Source: Fimbriosthenelais zetlandica
Lineage: Eukaryota
Assembly: GCA_977030845.1 (NCBI GenBank)
Contig: OZ365112.1
Location: 24,676,001-24,740,000 of the forward strand
DNA: 64,000 bases
Direction: 5' to 3'
Positions 3,939 through 59,577 of the stretch are shown here, one piece after another. The translations under genes and the position numbers were made by a program. The notes below the pieces were generated by a model. The model saw nothing but the letters and a program-made list of their open reading frames with translations, was not told where the DNA came from and did no database searches. Within the stretch, counting starts at the first letter, position 1. Each line of letters starts with the position of its first letter.

Positions 3939-6157
3939 CTGTTATGGGACGAGGCTGTGGTTCTCCCTGCTTCTCTCTCAGTCAAGCCTCTAATGAATGG
4001 ATGTCTGATGATCTGTTGCCTTGACGTCCGGCAGGATATGTTTGCTGAGGATGGGCGGATTGCCTTCTGAGCACGGCTAATTAGGACTGCTTCATTACCT
4101 CTGTCATAAATACAGAGATTATCCCATACCCTATTGTGTCCTCCAGACGCCTGGAAAAATGAAACACAAGCTTTAAGCCATGTGTATCACTACATTTCAC
4201 AAATCCACAGGTGCAGTTATATGTATATCATTTATCCTACCTTGTATATTAAATGGAATAATAGAGATATAAGTATTATATATATGTGAAACTGGTAATG
4301 ACAGACGGAGGGGGAAATACACACTCATTGTGTCAGTCAGGGAAGCTCTGTAAGAGGTGATTACTTCCCGTAATTGATTGTTCTACTCGTTCATTGGCTC
4401 AAGACGATCACACGATGTTTATAAGAATGCACTGTTCCAGCAGTACAGTAGGCCCTATGCCTTCTATCCACACAAGCAGAGTGACTTTCTAGAGCCTATA
4501 GTCTGTCGTCTCAAGATCTGCTATTAATACACTGTACATTGTATACTGTCCCAGTTCACTAGTCGGGTTCTCTCCTTACCCAAGTTGATGGTTATATTCA
4601 GTCAATAATAATCCTACAACTCCCAAGATTATTTTTAGCCTCAAACTAGTTCTTCAAAGTTGTCCCTGCCTATAAATATGGACATATTGTGTGTCAAGAT
4701 CCATGGGTTTCCGCTTGAAAGTTTGCGTGACAGTCTGTATAGGGAATCTGTGTGATTCACACGGCCTCTCAGACTTGTATTATAGCCGATATATACACCA
4801 TCAGTTTATACAAGATGATGGAAGTTTGCTCTACATTCAATGTCCACATCCCTTGTGCCTTTCATCTCCCGATCTTCAACCAATCAGCGGTAATGGCTAT
4901 TCAATTTTCCATTATAGTTCTCTACTAATTTTCACCCAAAAATGTGTAAAAATAATATGGGTTCCATTTCATCATCTCTGGTGGTGGCATTCACAGAATC
5001 ACTCAAGTCTAATTAGAAAACTCTTAATAATTTCCCTGCTGCCTCCCTCCAGGTGTTTTTGCTTGCTTGTCCTGCCATCCCTTTCTTCCGATACAATTGA
5101 TCATCCGTGGCGGAGGCACGTTCTGCTCTCACCGCGCCCGGATCAAGCCCGTGTAATTGATGACCCATTAGGCGAGGGAAGAAAGCTTGGGGGAAGATAT
5201 GATGAATCGGGAGGTGGGATCAATATGGGTTTCTACACTGCCTCTGATGATAGCTGGAGATTATAATTAAGGAGGGAGGGTCCAGTGATCTGTCACTTAT
5301 TTGTCAGTGTTCCCAGTACAGGTGGGAGGCAGGAGCAGCTCACGCATGGCTTCACCTTGTGGAGGGACTCAACCCAAGGCCCGCCTCATCCTCACAAGGG
5401 GATTATCCACGGATTAGAAAGCGGGGGGAAGACTAGTGTTTAGGTTGCTCTACACGCCTCCGCAGTAGAAAAAAGCGGCGAGGAGGGGAGAGAGTTATGA
5501 AGTTCTAAACAGCAAGAAAATTGATGAATTGGTCTGGAAGACAACATTGAGATTTTTACAAGTGCTAGTTCCCAACATCAAGTGTGCATTAATACATGTT
5601 TATGTCTCATTAAGTCTTGGTTATCATAGTCTTTAAAAAAGGTTAGTGGGTTTCTATCAATGAACATCATGGATCTGAATGGATTCCAAATCTTCTGCTG
5701 GAGTGTCATTTCATTCTACCCAAGTACCTCGACTGATCTTAGGGCCATCCTACAGTAAGATGTAAAGACATTATTGATCCTTTTACAGTAGTAGGCATAT
5801 AAAACCAAATTGTCAGATAAAATTTCAGACAAACATTTACATGTTCAACCAGGTGACTCATGTAAACAGAGAATATGGTATCATGTCTTGCCACAAGATT
5901 ATACGAGCAATAAAACCAAATCCACAGAGAAGAAAGGCACTTATCTATATAACTATTTGAAGATGGGTTTTACCTGGGGGCCTTGTTTCTTTTGGCGAGC
6001 TTTCCCTTGCTTCTCGATTGAAGGTAAGTGTATAGCATTCCCAACACAGGACAGAGCTCTTTGGCATTAGACACTTGAAAGCCTCCAGTGCGTTGCATTG
6101 GCCACAGGCGTCTCAGACCGTATATGTATCCCCGCCAGGGCCAGCAGGGGCTTGTAC
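3939..6157 (-). other. Putative spliced non-coding (5'UTR or lncRNA) exons at 5974-6157 and 3939-4150
   Basis: Minus-strand acceptors (ttttcttcag, tttttccag) and donors (gtaaaa, gtaagt) bracket two GC-richer blocks; joining them gives stops in all frames. Confidence 0.3.
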
Positions 6158-7539
6158 CTGAAGAAAAGCGCTGACGTCTGTTGTTTTCCACCAAGCGTGA
6201 TGGCTTTGAAAAGAAACTGGGAGAGGGGAGAAAGAGAGAAGGAGCTGTGAGAGGGGGAGAATGGAAGGTACAGATAAATAGGGATGAGTTCAGGGGATGG
6301 AAGGCGACAGGAGGGAAAATGGAGACTAAAAGAGGTGGTGGAAATGTAGGGAAAAAACAAAGATGGTCACGCGGCTTTCAATCATGCACACGTTTGAATG
6401 AATCATGTTGGTATCTGATAAAGCAATATAATAAATGTAGGGAGAGGGTTGGGTAGGTGGGGGTCAACTCCTGGCAAACACTATTTTTCCTTCGTGTTTG
6501 CAACTTTTTTACCGTCACAACTCAGGCAATTCAATTAAGGCGTTTTCTAACGCAAATGATTTTTGTGTGTTTTTTTTGTGGTTATTTGTTCGTAATTGGC
6601 AATTAAATAATTGATTTTCAAATATCCTAATATTAATGACAAAGTCAATGTTCTGTTGTCTAAAGCTTTTAACTTTAGGTATAGGATATAAGATTTATAA
6701 AAAGAATTCATAAAATGGAAATGACATACCTTTTCGAAGCAAAAGTACATAAATTAGGAGGGGATAGAATACGAGTATAGAATACATATTGGGCTGACGC
6801 ATACAATGTTCATCTGAAAATAGAAAATGACAAAATTATAAATGGGAAAAAGACATGTAGAAGAAATTGGGATGACACATGTAGTTTCCATCTACGTCCA
6901 ACCATTGAAAAACATGCATGTACACACTATAGTATAAGGTCGACATCTAAGTGTATACATACTCGCTTGTGTATTTATGCAATAAGGGGTCGCTTGCCAG
7001 TGGGGGAAGAAGATCCAAAGGAAGGCCAAGCCCTGGTGTCTCTGCAATTATCAACTATGCCAATTCGTGCGACCATCAAAAGGAGGAGTTACTAAATATA
7101 GAAGACCATCCGTCAGCGGTTGCTAAGTAAAGGGGAGATCAAGATGTGCTCCACAGGGAAAAGCTGAGAGAGGCGGGGGGAATGTAATGACAGGTTCATG
7201 TAGAGTAAAGGTCAGCGCCTGTCACGTGCTTTATGCCCGCCAGTGAAGTTTAATAGTGGGATACCATGTTAGGGTGTGGATTAGGACGAGGGTGTGGGAA
7301 CAAGGACACACTATAGACATCTATACATAGATCTAATGTACATACTATATATCCCATCCCTTGCACGATCAAAGGGTGTGGTTTCCTCCATTACAATAAC
7401 CACCTCGGCTTTTCTCTCCTTGACAGAGTGGATCTTGCAACTCTCAACCAAAGTGGGGATAATGCGGTAGATAAGATAAAGCAAATTATTGTTACTGAAT
7501 GGATTCCGATGATATCACATTAATCAATTACTTGAATGA

Positions 7540-35039: not shown

Positions 35040-38000
35040 TTATTGTTGAGGTCCACCCTGCTGCGTGTTGAGTTGTGACAACACACTCATAGTGACTTCA
35101 TTCAAACTCTGAAAAATACAAAATAAACCATATCAGAATTAATTCACCTCAGCCACAAATAATTAAATTTAAAACAATATTCTACGCTAAGTCTAAAATA
35201 CAATAAAGGAGAAAATTTATTTGTATTTTTAGACTCATCTCAATACACCGTGTGATTAAGGAACAATCATTGAGACTTAGATAAAGATGTCAATATACAT
35301 ACTTGAGGCTTGCAGTATTCCTCCAGCCAGTTAAACACGCAGGCTGACAGTTCAGCAAACGTTTGCACGGTGACTGTCTCATCAAACGAGTAGTAAAGTC
35401 TGTCTATAATTTCTTGGAACACGTGGAACTTAATCTCGTCTGAGACCTGGTTCTGACCCGCCTGGGGTGTGCTCTGGTGGGACTTCACCATGTGCTCGTA
35501 ATTCCTGTTTGGAGAAATTTAAAAAGAAACTAAATCACAATTTGCTATAGGATAAAGTGTACATTATCGCAAAATAATGCATAGCTTATCTCCAAGCCAG
35601 AGTACAGGGCTTATCAAAGTATTTAAGGTCTGCTTTGTTGTAAACCCAAGCTATGAAAAGAGGTTGTTATCTATCAGTATGATAATTTTTGTTATCTAGA
35701 CATGACTATTTTGGGGCTTGTTATCACGAACACGGCCTTATCACATAAAGGAAACCAATGAACGATATAGTGCACTTAGATCCGGGTTGGAACTTTATGG
35801 ATCGAGTGAAGCAGACTTTAATCAATAATCATTTTGTAGTGCCGAACTCTTCATATAAAACTTGGAAGTCCTAGGAATGATAGAACACTTCAACTTACGC
35901 CTTCATGATTTGAAGAGCCATCACTTCATTTTCCACCTTCTTCAGATCAGCCTCCAGCTTGGTCTTCTGGGTCTTTAACCGCTTCATGTAATCAATTGCT
36001 GCAAAAATAAGATCAATACTCTCAAATATTATGTCTTTAAGGATATACCCAATATATACTCCAGGGAAGGGTTTAAAAAAAAAAAGGAACATTTAAAATA
36101 TTCAAAACTATTCAAAAGTTTTTCCCTGGAATATTTGGTATAAATTAGCAAAGAATTGAGAAAATTGAATACGTACATCGCTGTAGAATAGCAGCTTTAC
36201 TCAGCTTCTGAGCACCCAGTGAGTCGGTCTGCTGACTGGGTGGTAGCAAACCAAACAGCTCATCATAGCCTTTCTGCAAACAAATCAAATTAATGTATTA
36301 TTAATTATTATTAATTATTTATATGAGGAATGGACAATCCCAAGTAAACTTGGCTAACCTAGCCCATCCCCCTTCCCAAACACAATCATGTGTTCATAGA
36401 CTTGTTTTGGGGAAATGAATTGGGCCACTTCAAGCATAAATTATACCAAGAAGTCATGGTTGAATAGTCCCTCACAAAGAGAAAGCCCCGCACTAAAAGG
36501 TAGGGCTGGGGAATATCCAGGTTTTGGCAACATCCGACTTCAGATATATCACTATAATATTTTTTATTTTTTATTATTTTTGACACTTACGATTTCCTTA
36601 CAATAAAAATGGTTTTATACATATATCACCTTACATAGATAGAGATAATGGATGGATGGATGGATTGATGGATGGATGGATGGATGTATAGAAGAAATGA
36701 GATCTATTTGACAAGTATAAGACATACCTTGATAGCATCTCTGCGCTTCTGTTCGGCATGAGTGTGAGCCTCACGACGCCTGTCTTTGTAGGTTAAATGT
36801 TTCAATGTTCCGTCACTATCTTCATCATCTGTAAAACAAAAGACAAATTATTACCAAACCTACTTCTTTTTGTAATATTTCAACAGTGATTTTCCTTTTA
36901 ACCTTACTAAAATATTCATCAGAGATACCTAACAGCAGAAACAAAATGCACTGGAACCTTCACCCGGATAGAGAGAGAGCTTTTCTTTTGGTTAAATTTA
37001 GGGCCACTCCTGCGTGATAGTGAAAATTTATGTCCTTCACCCAAAACAGCCTCAGATTTATAGCCACTTACACACATACTCTTCGTCGTTTCTCCGTCTC
37101 TTTTCATTCGCCTCAAAAAATATATCCAAATCCACAAAGTTATCAAGGTCTGGATCAGTATCGTCCCCCGACTTTTCCTCTCCACTCAAAACTACAGAAA
37201 ACAACCCTTCCTCCTCCTCTTTGACTTTAGCACTGGAGCCTTCTCCACTATCATCTAACCCAGCTTGTGTATTAGATGCTCCAGCCACAGGCTCCCCACC
37301 ACCTCCAGTAGGTGCGTTACCAAGCTGGGCACTCTCAATTAAGTCGTCAGCGAATCTACTCATATCTGATCCTTCCCTTTTAGTTTTAGGATCCATGGGT
37401 ACTAGATCTAATGTCCTATTGGCCTGGCCAAGTTCATCGAGAAGTCCTTCAAAATCATTGAAAACATCACTGGTGTCACCTGCGTATATGGATGCAGGTG
37501 TATTATACATAGAGGGGGTGTCCTCCCCAATGGCCTGTATGCTATGATGCTCGAGCGCAAAAGGCAAGGGATTCATTGCTGGTGAATTCAACCTCGCTCT
37601 TCGGTTACTATCCTATCTACGCTTGGGCAAAAACCTGCCTGTTTTACCTACGTTCTCTATGACAAAACTGCACCTCAAAGAAAACCGTCTCGATATATTA
37701 TAGTATCAGATATCAAATGATTTTGCCCTTATATTGTTTTATAAAAATCCCATAGCTAAAAATAGGCATCCCCATGAATGTGGTCACGGTCTAAATGATC
37801 TAGAACACATGTTACATATATTAAGTACTTACAGGGTAATTTGAGCGCCTTAATTCAAATAGACTTGCAAACTATACATGTATGCAAACTAAAAATAAAC
37901 ATTATGCAAGTATTGACCCAAGGAGAGGAGATAAATGTGAATATTAAATATTCTATAAAATCTCTAATAAAAACGACATCACCAATAAATATATCTGGCT

Positions 38001-40086
38001 CCTAAATATACATTTTGTAAATCTAAAGAACAATTTTTGATCGTTTACCTAATACCTATAACCAGTGTTAAATAGTACAAGAAAAGACATTTTTATTCTG
38101 GATCCACATTTTGCTTCGTCCCACATTACATACATTTTGTAAATGCCTTTCAATTTAAAAAAAAGTTAACACTCTGATTGGTATGGTAGCTATCGTTGAA
38201 TATCAGCAGGAGGGAATATACTAACCTGTGTTGTGAGCCGAGGAGGCGGAGGAGTAGCTGATAGCATGTACAGAACCTGTGCTGTTAGTGCGGGAGAATG
38301 AGAAGCGATTAGAGCCCGTGGGACTCTGCTGCTCAAACTTGAGCTCCTGGAGACCTGAGGCCTCCATCACCCCTGAAATAATAAAAAAATGACAATCAAT
38401 TTTACTTACAATCGTAGATACATAAATGTTTCATCATAAGATAATCCGTGCCTGCAAATACGGGGTGCAGTAAAACTGCAATATTCATTTCCAACTTGAT
38501 CTTGGATTTGGACGTTACTACATCCAGGCCCTCCAATGTAGAAATCAACTCACCGAACTTGAAATTAAACCTTCACAGCTAAAAGCTTTCCTTACAAACA
38601 AAGCAGAAAATCTTAATTGAAACATTCAGTAAAATGAACTTTAGATTTTCACCTGAACGCCTCTCCCGTAGTGAACGCTGTCTTAATTCCATACCCACCA
38701 GTGTGTCCCTGTGTCTATATCTAGGGCTCCTCCCCACCAACGAACCCGGGGGAGAAGTAAGAGGAGAGAATACCGGAGAAAACCCAGATAATACTCAGTC
38801 AACCATCCCCTCATTGGTTACCCATTGACACATGTCCTACACATTACGTAACCACTCCAGGGGCCTGTTTCATAAGAGATTAGCGCTGCATATATACACC
38901 ATATACCTAACTAACAGTTACACGGGCTCATATAGGGCATCTTGGTTATGAAACAGACTAGAGCAGGCCCTGTTATGTATTCAGGTTGCATGTTACATCA
39001 CCCCTATCAACACATCCACCAGGACAGATTTTAGTGTTTAACTGGCCACTATTGACTGAGCAAACATTAGGTTTCCACGAGAAAAAATAGTGGTTGTCTA
39101 AACAATTCTTTTCAATATCCTCTCAAAGTTGGGAAAGTATACATGAGACTTACCCTGTATTTGTCCTGTGGAAATTGCGGTATAATTCATCGCGTGCATT
39201 AATCAATTTAGTGTGATATTCTCAAATTAATCACGATCAAATCTGGTCACCTTTTACATGGTTTTAGATCTCCACTTAGTTTCACTGTATAGAACCTAAT
39301 TATACCAAGCCAACTATGTAGGACCTTACAAGATGTCCAGCTATTTTAGGGAATGCGTTCTTCACCAACTGAAGCACCATCCCTCCCGCCCCGCCCCCCA
39401 CCCCGACACCACTGCCCCGCCCCTTTGCGTCCCCTTCCCAACCCATCCCCGACAACCACTCACTAAGGGAATGAGCACCCCCCCCCCCCCGGCCCCATCC
39501 CCACTGGAAAATTCAAGGTAAAGCCCCGTTTTAGACCGATGCTATTTTTAGATTATCTGACCTAGGTGTCATGGGTCAATTTGTCATGGTCCCAGATACT
39601 GACCCTGGAAAATGTTGGCCCTTCGGCCTTGTCCTACTTAGCTAAATGTAAAGGCCAAGAGGTCACCAGTTGGAAAAAGCCATGGAGATACCATCTCTCA
39701 GTACATCAGTGTTCGTTCAAACAGAGGGAATACTTGTACATTAAAACGGTGTAGTCTCTCTGGTTCAAGGAACATCATCGGAGACGAAGAAATAAGTCAA
39801 GAATGGTTTGAAATATACTATAAATTCCTATAAGTTACTGAAATATTACAGACTCCTATGATAACATTTTTACATATTTAACCCCAGTTTCAAGCTTTGA
39901 TAATTTTTACCAGATAATCAATATTAATGGTTACTTCAAGTAAGAATGTTAAACAGGTAAAAGGTTATTAATAGTGTGGTAAATTCGTTTTAAATTTAGT
40001 ACATGATTAGGCAATGTAAATTACATGGACAACTGAATCCACTCACCCGGGTCAAACAGCTCTTCTTTGTAAGCGGAGTCTGCCAT
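35040..40086 (-). CDS. MLX: Max-like protein X (Mlx/Bigmax), bHLH-Zip; canonical isoform ~251 aa
   Basis: Exons 40047-40086, 38226-38372, 36728-36828, 36177-36273, 35899-35998, 35303-35504, 35040-35108 (756 nt, phases consistent). AHNTDDEDSD, YKDRRREAHTHAEQKRRDAIKKGYDEL, KLSKAAILQRSIDY, zipper, DCD-type ELSACVFNWLEEYCKPQ. Start codon choice less certain than the bHLH-Zip exons. Confidence 0.92.
36649..36687. repeat. (GGAT)n microsatellite
   Basis: gatggatggatggattgatggatggatggatggatg. Confidence 0.9.
37072..37578 (-). CDS. MLX: Putative alternative (cassette or first) MLX exon encoding ~169 acidic residues
   Basis: Stop-free 177-codon ORF in an AT-rich intron; donor GTG T|gtaagt (phase 1) matches the next exon; acceptor attcaccag gives a 507-nt phase 1-1 exon; in-frame ATG at 37574-37576. 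Confidence 0.6.
38861..38970. mobile_element. Small MITE-like element with GGGCCTGTTTCATAA-type ends
   Basis: ctgtttcataa (38865-38875) and ttatgaaacag (38946-38956) are exact inverted repeats; terminal gggc/gccc separated by a 10-bp insertion on the right; a similar left end at ~13454. Confidence 0.45.
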
Positions 40087-40642
40087 GGCCTCCTATATAA
40101 GGTACAAAAGATTACTTTTTTTTTTAGAACTTTGGACCGAGAATGTAGCAATTTGAACATTTCTTTATCTAAATTTATGACCATGAGTGAATCACATGTT
40201 ATTAAAGTAATAGAAAATAAGAAAATCAAACAAACTTTACACAGTTAAAAAAGTCTGCGTAATATATTTCTTTTTGGAGGAAATTTACATTTCAGTAGGT
40301 CTAGAGGCCTGGGGTTGGAGGGGCCAGTGAAAACAAAAAATCATAACCCAGCCAGGCGCAAATAGGCCAACACCCCTTCCGATTTCTTAAACCTAAAGAA
40401 AGCAATTTTACATTTGACAATTAGCCCAAACTAGCCTTTCTGACCCATACACTAGTGTTCCATTCCAGACACCTGTCTAAACTCTTTCTATACTAGTACG
40501 TGTATGTGTACACTACAGATATACAGGGCATCCTCTTCAGCTGAAGATTAGGTCAACGACCTGTTAGCAAAACTATAATGGTGCAATATTAGTATGAAAA
40601 GAATTCTCAACAAAATGACAATTTCTCAACACCCTGGCTCAC

Positions 40643-40816
40643 CTGGCGTATATGAGGGATGTCATCCAGCCATTTACCTGGCGATATTAACCTGGGATTG
40701 TCTGAATATTTGAAAGCATTCGGGTAACAACTCCCATAAGGTAATTTGCGTTTCAGGGAAGGATCACACGTGTCTGGGGGATCCCGACTTTCTGATTTGG
40801 ACGGTCCTTCAGCCAT
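40643..40816 (-). CDS. MLX: Possible additional upstream MLX coding exon (58 aa)
   Basis: aaatATGG context, 174 nt, CAG|gtgagc donor, phase 0 matching the ttatatag acceptor of exon 40047-40092 (EAMADSAYKEELFDP). Confidence 0.4.
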
Positions 40817-42718: not shown

Positions 42719-54959
<12,241 letters not shown>

Positions 54960-58182: not shown

Positions 58183-59577
58183 ATGTCTGTGCAGCAAGAA
58201 TCTGTGTCACGCCTGGCGCCTGTAGCGTCTCGTCTCACAGTGAGAGAGGCCCGGGCGGGTGATGTCGATGAAGTAGCATCTATCGACACTGGTTTACATG
58301 GGGGCCTCGACCAACTCCCTGCCCTCCTCATCTCTCACCTAAAAGATCCCAACCGGCGGGCCAGAGTCTGCTTATTAGATGACAAAATCGTGAGTAATGA
58401 ATTCCCCCCAAAATTACTGAAATGTTTAATTGTTTTGTTTTATTTATTTACAAAAATGTTTGACAAATTATTTTTAGATCGCTTTCCAAATGGCCCATGT
58501 TATCGACAATGGTACCACAGTCATACATCAGTCGTTGAGACTACAGCCGCACATGAGGGCCAAGGGCCTCTGGCCCATCATCCGAGCCAAACTCTCCCAA
58601 CCTCTCCCTGATTTTCCTCACATATCCAGAATGGCCCTCGCCACCGCTGTGAAAACTGTCTACCTGCGACGGATGTTGAAGCGCCCTAACACGTTAAACT
58701 ACGTTATGGAAAGGGTGAGATTTAAAAAAAGTTTACATGATGTGAATTAAAGAATCGTTGAGTTTTCGTTCCTAAACATAATACACAGCAATTAGGTCTA
58801 TATTACATATAGAAAAGGGTTCTCAGTACAAACGTTGAAGGATCTGAACACCACAAACATTTCTGCAGGGCAGTTACGGTTGTTCTCTTTTGCAGTTTTA
58901 TTGGACGTAAGCCCCATGCAAATGTCTCCATTCCAATTCACTCAATCGTGACTAACACTTATACCTCTCTTGTATATTTTCAGCCTACAGTCCGGATTAG
59001 ACCCACTGAAGCTGATATACGTAGGCTAGAAGTATACCCGCCTACAGCCAGTACTCATGAGCTGCTCACATGTGAGAAAGCCACCGCCGTCCTCCAGAAC
59101 AAACTCAACCAGTCCCTCTTATTCCCCCATGGCCGCGTCATACTTTCCTGGGAACCGTTCAGACTTATGTCAACTAATATACAGACCATTGTCCACCGCT
59201 ATCAAGGGATACATTCAATGTATGCGACCCCAGCAAGTAACAACGCTCAACTCGATTTAAAATCGACCACGGAAGGAAATGGAGAAGTGACATCTATATC
59301 ATTTGGATGCGCGTACCAGGTGCCCTCTGGGCTAAGGTATGACTTGGACTATTATGGACATGATGCGGACGATGCTTTAACCCATGTTTTGAGACATTTA
59401 CCACGTGCTTTAAATATTTTCGAAGGAGGAGAGTTGAGCGTTGAAGTATTTCTGCCAGTGGCTTTGGACAGGGAAGCTCTCCAGACGGCCGTTCGGGAGA
59501 AATTCCAACTGCGCTGTCTTTCAGAGGGTTTGACATTCTATCTGTTTGAAGGCCCGATGATGGCTGCGAAGTTGTGA
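58183..59577 (+). CDS. NAT16: NAT16/histidine N-acetyltransferase-like GNAT protein, 3 exons, 345 aa
   Basis: Exons 58183-58389, 58478-58714, 58984-59577 (1038 nt, phase 0 junctions). LHGGLDQLP, LKDPNR, VIDNGTTVIHQSLRLQPHMRAKGL resemble recalled NAT16 motifs (YGGLDYLP, LRDPDR, VIDAGETVLVEGLRVAPWERGKGV). One-to-one orthology not established. Confidence 0.75.

Follow-up and report, generated by a model that had tools for sequence, protein, structure and literature searches.

The window analysed here is a stretch of 64,000 nucleotides (nt) of the Fimbriosthenelais zetlandica genome (assembly GCA_977030845.1, contig OZ365112.1, positions 24,676,001 to 24,740,000 of the forward strand; coordinates below count from its first letter). 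It contains a complete minus-strand gene for MLX, a basic helix-loop-helix (bHLH) zipper protein. MLX and MAX are viewed as neutral dimerisation hubs, and it is the partner, Mondo or Myc on one side and Mxd or Mnt on the other, that decides between activation and repression; to MLX or MAX dimers the activation domain is supplied by MondoA/ChREBP and Myc. In the second intron of this MLX gene, on the gene's own strand, we find an intact open reading frame (ORF) that looks like real coding sequence, encodes a strongly acidic peptide and ends at a consensus splice donor in the phase required by the following exon. We explore here what this ORF may be, and tentatively read it as an alternative first exon of MLX.

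Results

The MLX gene comprises seven coding exons, which splice in frame into a protein of 251 amino acids (aa). Exon 1 (40047..40092, minus strand, as are all features of the gene) carries the ATG at 40086 and an acceptor at 40092 that serves a further, upstream exon; exon 2 (38226..38372) encodes ...SFSRTNSTGS...SSASSAHNT; exon 3 (36728..36828), which the candidate exon would join, encodes DDEDSD, the basic region and the bHLH; and exons 4-7, including the stop, lie at 36273-36177, 35998-35899, 35504-35303 and 35108-35040. The product is 64.6% identical to the max-like protein X of Mytilus californianus over 243 aa. Identity with further MLX proteins from molluscs and annelids is 62-68% (68% for the homologue P0012), and the closest MLX proteins are spiralian. 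Similarity to orthologues extends over the full length and includes the basic region, the HLH-zipper and the C-terminal dimerisation/cytoplasmic localisation domain; the retrieved homologues carry PF00010. Before its basic region, the window gene has the canonical MLX junction, ...SSAxNT / DDEDSD. The junction recurs in L001, a metatranscriptome contig resembling complementary DNA (cDNA), and 71 homologues share it, with 13-30 aa between the motif and the basic region. Judged by these sequence features, the gene is a true MLX orthologue.

The intronic ORF forms part of a stop-free run of 184 codons (37061..37612, minus strand), bounded by an in-frame stop upstream (37615-37613) and a TAA downstream (37060-37058); counted from a TTG, the ORF (37058-37591) encodes 177 aa. 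The candidate alternative first coding exon within it (37072..37576, minus strand) runs from an ATG at 37576-37574 to the last base before a donor, GTAAGT (37066..37071, minus strand), which follows the exon bases TGT, and comprises 168 codons plus one base. This donor is in phase 1, as exon 3 needs: the single base left at 37072 and the AT opening exon 3 at 36828 form a Tyr codon, and the MLX frame is kept. In quality it is comparable with the gene's own donors (e.g. GGC|GTAAGT, GAT|GTACGT). The stretch thus has an in-frame ATG, an open frame from there to the donor and a donor phase that matches the next constitutive exon. The 168-aa peptide contains 20 D, 18 E, 6 K and 6 R, for a net charge of -26. 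The ORF has a GC content of 0.459, higher than that of the flanking parts of the intron (0.316 on the upstream side, 0.354 on the downstream side) and within the range of 0.44-0.57 spanned by the MLX exons. A sequence-only reading of this DNA had drawn attention to the intron, and its description proves accurate in each of these respects: the 177-codon stop-free ORF on the MLX strand, the flanking exons ending ...SSAHNT and beginning DDEDSD...bHLH (38372-38226 and 36828-36728, the canonical junction), the strong donor of fitting phase, the ORF's own ATG, the hand count of roughly 38 D/E to 12 K/R, which turns out exact, and the raised GC content.

Whether such a frame is likely to be translated can be judged from its codon structure. 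The base-by-codon-position chi-square of the ORF is 51.4, against about 5 for pieces of the intron; in 3000 stop-free sequences drawn from the ORF's own first-order Markov composition the mean was 9 and the maximum 36.6. The underlying pattern, G at 45% of first positions, A at 37% of second and T at 37% of third, is the one usual for coding sequence. Expressed per 100 codons, periodicity reaches 24 in the ORF, the highest of the long open frames in the window; the value is 18 for the MLX coding sequence itself, 7 for an exon of a neighbouring gene with Pfam support and 2-3 for chance-like ORFs. In sliding windows the periodicity rises at the ATG and drops at the donor, and outside these limits stops crowd all three frames; given such sharp edges, the ORF is a discrete unit rather than the central remnant of a longer gene that has decayed. 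GC by codon position is 0.59, 0.40 and 0.39, the first two values coding-like and the third near intron background, a pattern that fits an exon constrained by its amino acids with weak codon bias, and that also fits an origin different from the rest of MLX. Overall, the ORF in the intron has the behaviour of genuine coding sequence, beyond what chance produces. Tandem Repeats Finder reported no tandem or trinucleotide repeat in the ORF even at a score of 30, and a trinucleotide repeat therefore does not account for the periodicity. The antisense, plus-strand frame is open as well, which is explained by the scarcity of Tyr, His and Gln codons in the ORF; as the coding frame it was rejected, its T1-C2-A3 pattern being the mirror image of that on the minus strand. 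Three other long stop-free runs occur in the window, at 4676-5263 (plus), 51221-51805 (plus) and 5973-6377 (minus); they are 135-196 codons long, score 2-3 per 100 codons for periodicity and, resembling open frames that arose by chance, serve as an internal control.

How the exon would be used is suggested by its borders. The sequence-only reading had offered two possibilities, a 507-nt cassette between exons 2 and 3 (37072-37578) and an alternative first exon. The arithmetic of the former is correct and the frame would be preserved, but the AG acceptor that it requires (37579..37580, minus strand) has no polypyrimidine tract (7/18 pyrimidines), whereas the seven real acceptors of the gene have 11-14/18, mostly T; on this ground the 507-nt cassette is unlikely. 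The first-exon model appears to fit better, with a coding signal that starts at the ATG. Upstream, TATA-like elements at 37693..37743 (minus strand; TATAAAA at 37743-37737 and TATAATATAT at 37702-37693) may constitute a core promoter, and the ATG of the ORF is the first one downstream of TATAAAA, none occurring between approximately 37712 and the ATG. The CpG observed/expected ratio is 0.89 in 37577-37800, against about 0.51 elsewhere. No AATAAA or ATTAAA lies between the ORF stop and MLX exon 3, so that a transcript begun at the ORF would run on into MLX and encounter the consensus donor, correctly phased.

The peptide had also been described as activation-domain-like, and a published composition rule bears this out for its C-terminal part. 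The rule (PMC10550315, equation 1) evaluates 39-aa tiles and asks for a charge of -9 or below, at least 7 W+F+Y+L residues and a position inside the CITED2-VP16 H1 diagonal; 72% of 144 rule predictions on human factors were active when tested (PMC10550315). Within the exon, the tiles that begin at residues 117-121 satisfy the rule, with charges of -11 to -14 and 8 W, F, Y or L residues, and four more that span the exon 3 junction (starts 136-139) pass as well, the full set of passing tiles keeping that range of charge with 7-8 such residues. In contrast, all tiles of canonical MLX and of all 155 retrieved homologues fail. Single-sequence AlphaFold2, run without an alignment, gave a mean predicted local distance difference test score (pLDDT) of 49, a low confidence compatible with disorder, and placed helices at residues 36-52, 72-84 and 151-166; these cover the hydrophobic-acidic stretches that the sequence-only reading had singled out. 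MLX is otherwise described as a protein with little activity of this kind, its isoforms homodimerising and binding E-boxes with negligible transcriptional activity of their own (PMC7358075), in agreement with the premise, already adopted in that reading, that Mlx has no activation domain of its own.

N-terminal variation in MLX is found both in the window and beyond it. An upstream exon, which we call E0 (40643..40816, minus strand), encodes 58 aa from an ATG at 40816, ends in WLDDIPHIRQ at a GTGAGC donor and, when joined to the acceptor at 40092, 6 nt ahead of the exon-1 ATG, yields a form of about 311 aa. Around its WLDDIP motif, 10 of 15 residues match the N-terminal extension of the transcript-derived homologue P0037, and we regard E0 as a second N-terminal variant of the window MLX. 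Among the homologues, P0012 and P0037 differ by their first exons, P0056 (a Pomacea model) has a different N-terminus joined directly to DEDEDSD, and P0121 (a Logan transcript, 500 aa) and P0021 (a Biomphalaria glabrata isoform, 335 aa) are long N-terminal forms. Alternative first exons are usual in the MLX family. Some spiralian MLX proteins, such as P0121 and P0021, have Q/S-rich N-terminal extensions of 100-260 aa; these are mutually unrelated, and it therefore seems that lineage-specific additions have a hotspot at the N-terminus of MLX. The cDNA-like contigs L001 and L002 show only the canonical junction. A scan of metagenome contigs with MLX exon 6 gave nine loci, all distant, and in one distant relative (L005) the equivalent intron, of about 490 nt, contains no comparable ORF.

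Searches for relatives of the ORF itself were blank throughout. Neither the ORF nor its antisense ORF has a significant match in Pfam; a word-indexed search of 5.8 billion proteins returned no match, an exhaustive phmmer comparison with 1.84 billion representatives returned none at E <= 0.001, a scan of metagenome contigs found no locus, and exact look-ups in public assemblies, with the ATG or the TTG as start, found none. ESM Atlas feature neighbours were generic disordered fragments (best score 0.65) and uninformative, and Rfam found nothing over the whole window. These collections hold many animal MLX proteins, annotated and transcript-derived, the closest of them 65-68% identical to the window MLX; yet a calibration profile built from P0037 and the window exons, which should have ranked the species' own MLX at the top, returned, after P0037 itself (659 bits), nothing closer than P0012 (484 bits). 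The species and its close relatives are thus absent from the collections, and with close relatives unsampled the blank results say nothing about conservation within the lineage. They do imply that the exon does not belong to the ancient, widely shared portion of MLX. At the distances sampled, disordered regions are unalignable, as illustrated by the conserved E0, which keeps only a 15-residue motif. A transposon or retrocopy origin, an outcome against which the sequence-only reading had itself warned, is rejected: neither terminal or long terminal repeats, nor a target-site duplication, nor a poly(A) tail were found at the ORF, there is no second copy within the window, and Pfam and protein searches show no such homology.

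Other features of the window are as follows. Intron 1 of MLX contains a very G-rich tract (39380-39500, minus strand), where the gene strand shows runs of at least 12 G and GGGG blocks in repetition; local GC is 0.55 and the GC skew is strong, and the tract could form G-quadruplexes. In intron 3, just after the bHLH exon, lies a (CATC)n-type microsatellite (36640-36705, minus strand; catccatccatc...). An ABI gene begins on the plus strand at about 42.7 kb, with an SH3 exon near 54.8 kb, and stands head to head with MLX exon E0 at a distance of about 1.9 kb; in human, ABI1 and PDSS1 are neighbours, and MLX is not known to lie between them. A histidine N-acetyltransferase-like gene follows at 58183-59577 (plus strand), its last exon matching Pfam Hisat_C (PF24066, E 1.3e-11).

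Discussion

In this study, we examined an acidic ORF in the second intron of a spiralian MLX gene. The reading that we favour, and favour with some reserve at rather less than even confidence, is that the ORF is a real, lineage-restricted coding exon that is transcribed from a promoter within intron 2, serving MLX as an alternative first exon and giving the protein an acidic N-terminus that resembles an activation domain. Under this model, transcription would start some 100-140 nt upstream of the ATG at 37576, and the GTAAGT donor after 37072 would close the exon and join it to exon 3. The predicted product has 357 aa, in which a 168-aa acidic region replaces the usual 62 N-terminal residues; this region would be mostly disordered, with three short amphipathic helices in the AlphaFold2 model and a KRRR cluster, and would be followed by a normal bHLH-zipper and the C-terminal dimerisation domain.

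Several observations weigh against this model. None of the 155 retrieved MLX proteins has any insertion at the junction, and none has an N-terminus related to the ORF; no homologue of it was found in Pfam, in the collection of 5.8 billion proteins, among the 1.84 billion representatives or in the metagenome contigs. Exon 2, whose conservation across animals is strong, would be missing from the 357-aa isoform. Third-position GC (GC3) and codon choice in the ORF are unlike the rest of MLX (0.39 vs 0.575 for GC3). The promoter signal consists only of TATA-like strings in AT-rich DNA, and since such strings are common in AT-rich introns it is a weak one. Finally, the rule for activation domains looks at composition, and its validation was confined to human transcription factors.

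The same observations lend themselves to a different account, the main rival, which we consider doubtful though it deserves to be taken seriously: the ORF may be coding sequence that lies outside MLX messages, either a nested orphan gene, encoding a 172-aa acidic protein that ends in ...CKWL, or the intact captured remnant of another gene or mobile element. With its own ATG and stop the ORF is complete in itself; it is an orphan in every search made, its codon usage and GC3 depart from those of MLX, and acidic disordered regions diverge too fast for a donor gene to be traced at the distance of 65-68% identity at which MLX is sampled. Against this account, no poly(A) signal lies between the stop and MLX exon 3, and a consensus GTAAGT stands four codons before that stop, in exactly the phase of exon 3. 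Terminal repeats, target-site duplications, a poly(A) tail or a second copy in the window are not seen either, and the coding signal breaks off abruptly at both ATG and donor, beyond which no frame-shifted extension follows.

Much less probable is that a patch of the intron rich in purines and comparatively rich in GC is open by chance and never translated. When the intron was shuffled 2000 times with its dinucleotides preserved, an open run of at least 184 codons arose once, and among 2000 shuffles of the GC-rich core alone it arose 5 times; these frequencies (p 0.0005-0.0025) are not extreme given the number of such segments per window, and with the number of such segments in a genome the length of the open frame is by itself suggestive, not decisive. 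Long open frames free of any coding signal do occur in the window (e.g. 4676-5263 and 51221-51805), and the antisense frame is open too, although automatically so, from the scarce Tyr, His and Gln codons. What an untranslated patch does not explain is a periodicity above all 3000 stop-free nulls, with the G-rich first positions that are a universal coding pattern, in a sequence without a tandem or trinucleotide repeat to cause it, nor the coincidence of ATG, donor, phase and GC island. The least probable account is a cassette exon between exons 2 and 3, either the 507-nt version, which preserves the frame, or a shorter one from an internal, phase-compatible acceptor such as 37446 or 37179 (11/18 pyrimidines), since the acceptors at 37578 (7/18) and 37596 (5/18) fall well short of the real ones, the periodicity runs from the ATG and not from an internal acceptor, and insertions at this junction number 0 in 155 MLX proteins.

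If the first-exon model holds, a functional consequence may be envisaged. With an N-terminus of the composition of an acidic activation domain, the 357-aa isoform could bring to any MLX dimer an activating potential that is not borrowed from Mondo. MLX homodimers, or MLX with a repressor partner, could then activate E-box/carbohydrate-response targets without the nutrient-sensing domain of Mondo, through a newly evolved acidic activation domain expressed from an intronic promoter. This idea is coherent and drawn from composition, and we think it rather unlikely to be correct as a whole. Were it true, the division of labour between hub and partner would no longer hold in one lineage, where MLX would have an isoform with an activation domain of its own; the Myc/Max/Mlx network would be partly rewired, and the gene would be a clear example from nature of a transcription factor that acquired an effector domain through a new first exon. 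Should the activation idea fail, the presence in a conserved gene of an intact orphan exon whose coding signature is strong would still provide a useful test of how new exons and disordered effector regions arise.

Known systems place the candidate in context. The mammalian MLX alpha, beta and gamma isoforms belong to the same family and, like the proposed form, differ only N-terminally, ahead of the DDEDSD/bHLH exon, a variation that is reported to alter their localisation (PMC7358075). Unlike what is proposed for the candidate, they are reported to have negligible transcriptional activity (PMC7358075). Their extra exons lie upstream of the conserved N-terminal exons; the candidate exon is located in the intron that immediately precedes the bHLH exon, would take the place of the conserved exon 2 and encodes a strongly acidic peptide. 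A second comparison is with P0121, P0021 and P0056, which in related phyla have gained unrelated, probably disordered N-termini through alternative first exons; these share no sequence similarity with the ORF, and none passes the acidic activation-domain rule. The candidate resembles the acidic activation domains of the VP16 H1/CITED2 type, to which the acidic exposure model applies, in having 39-aa tiles inside the predictor boundary (PMC10550315) and, as far as the low-confidence AlphaFold2 model goes, perhaps also in combining disorder with short amphipathic helices; the likeness is one of composition only, not of sequence homology. From MondoA/ChREBP and Myc, finally, the candidate is set apart by showing no similarity to the N-terminal conserved boxes of Mondo or Myc (0 matches at E <= 0.001 among 1.84 billion proteins) and by a dimerisation domain that is MLX's own; what the proposed isoform would share with them is the overall architecture, a bHLH-zipper and an N-terminal activating region in one chain.

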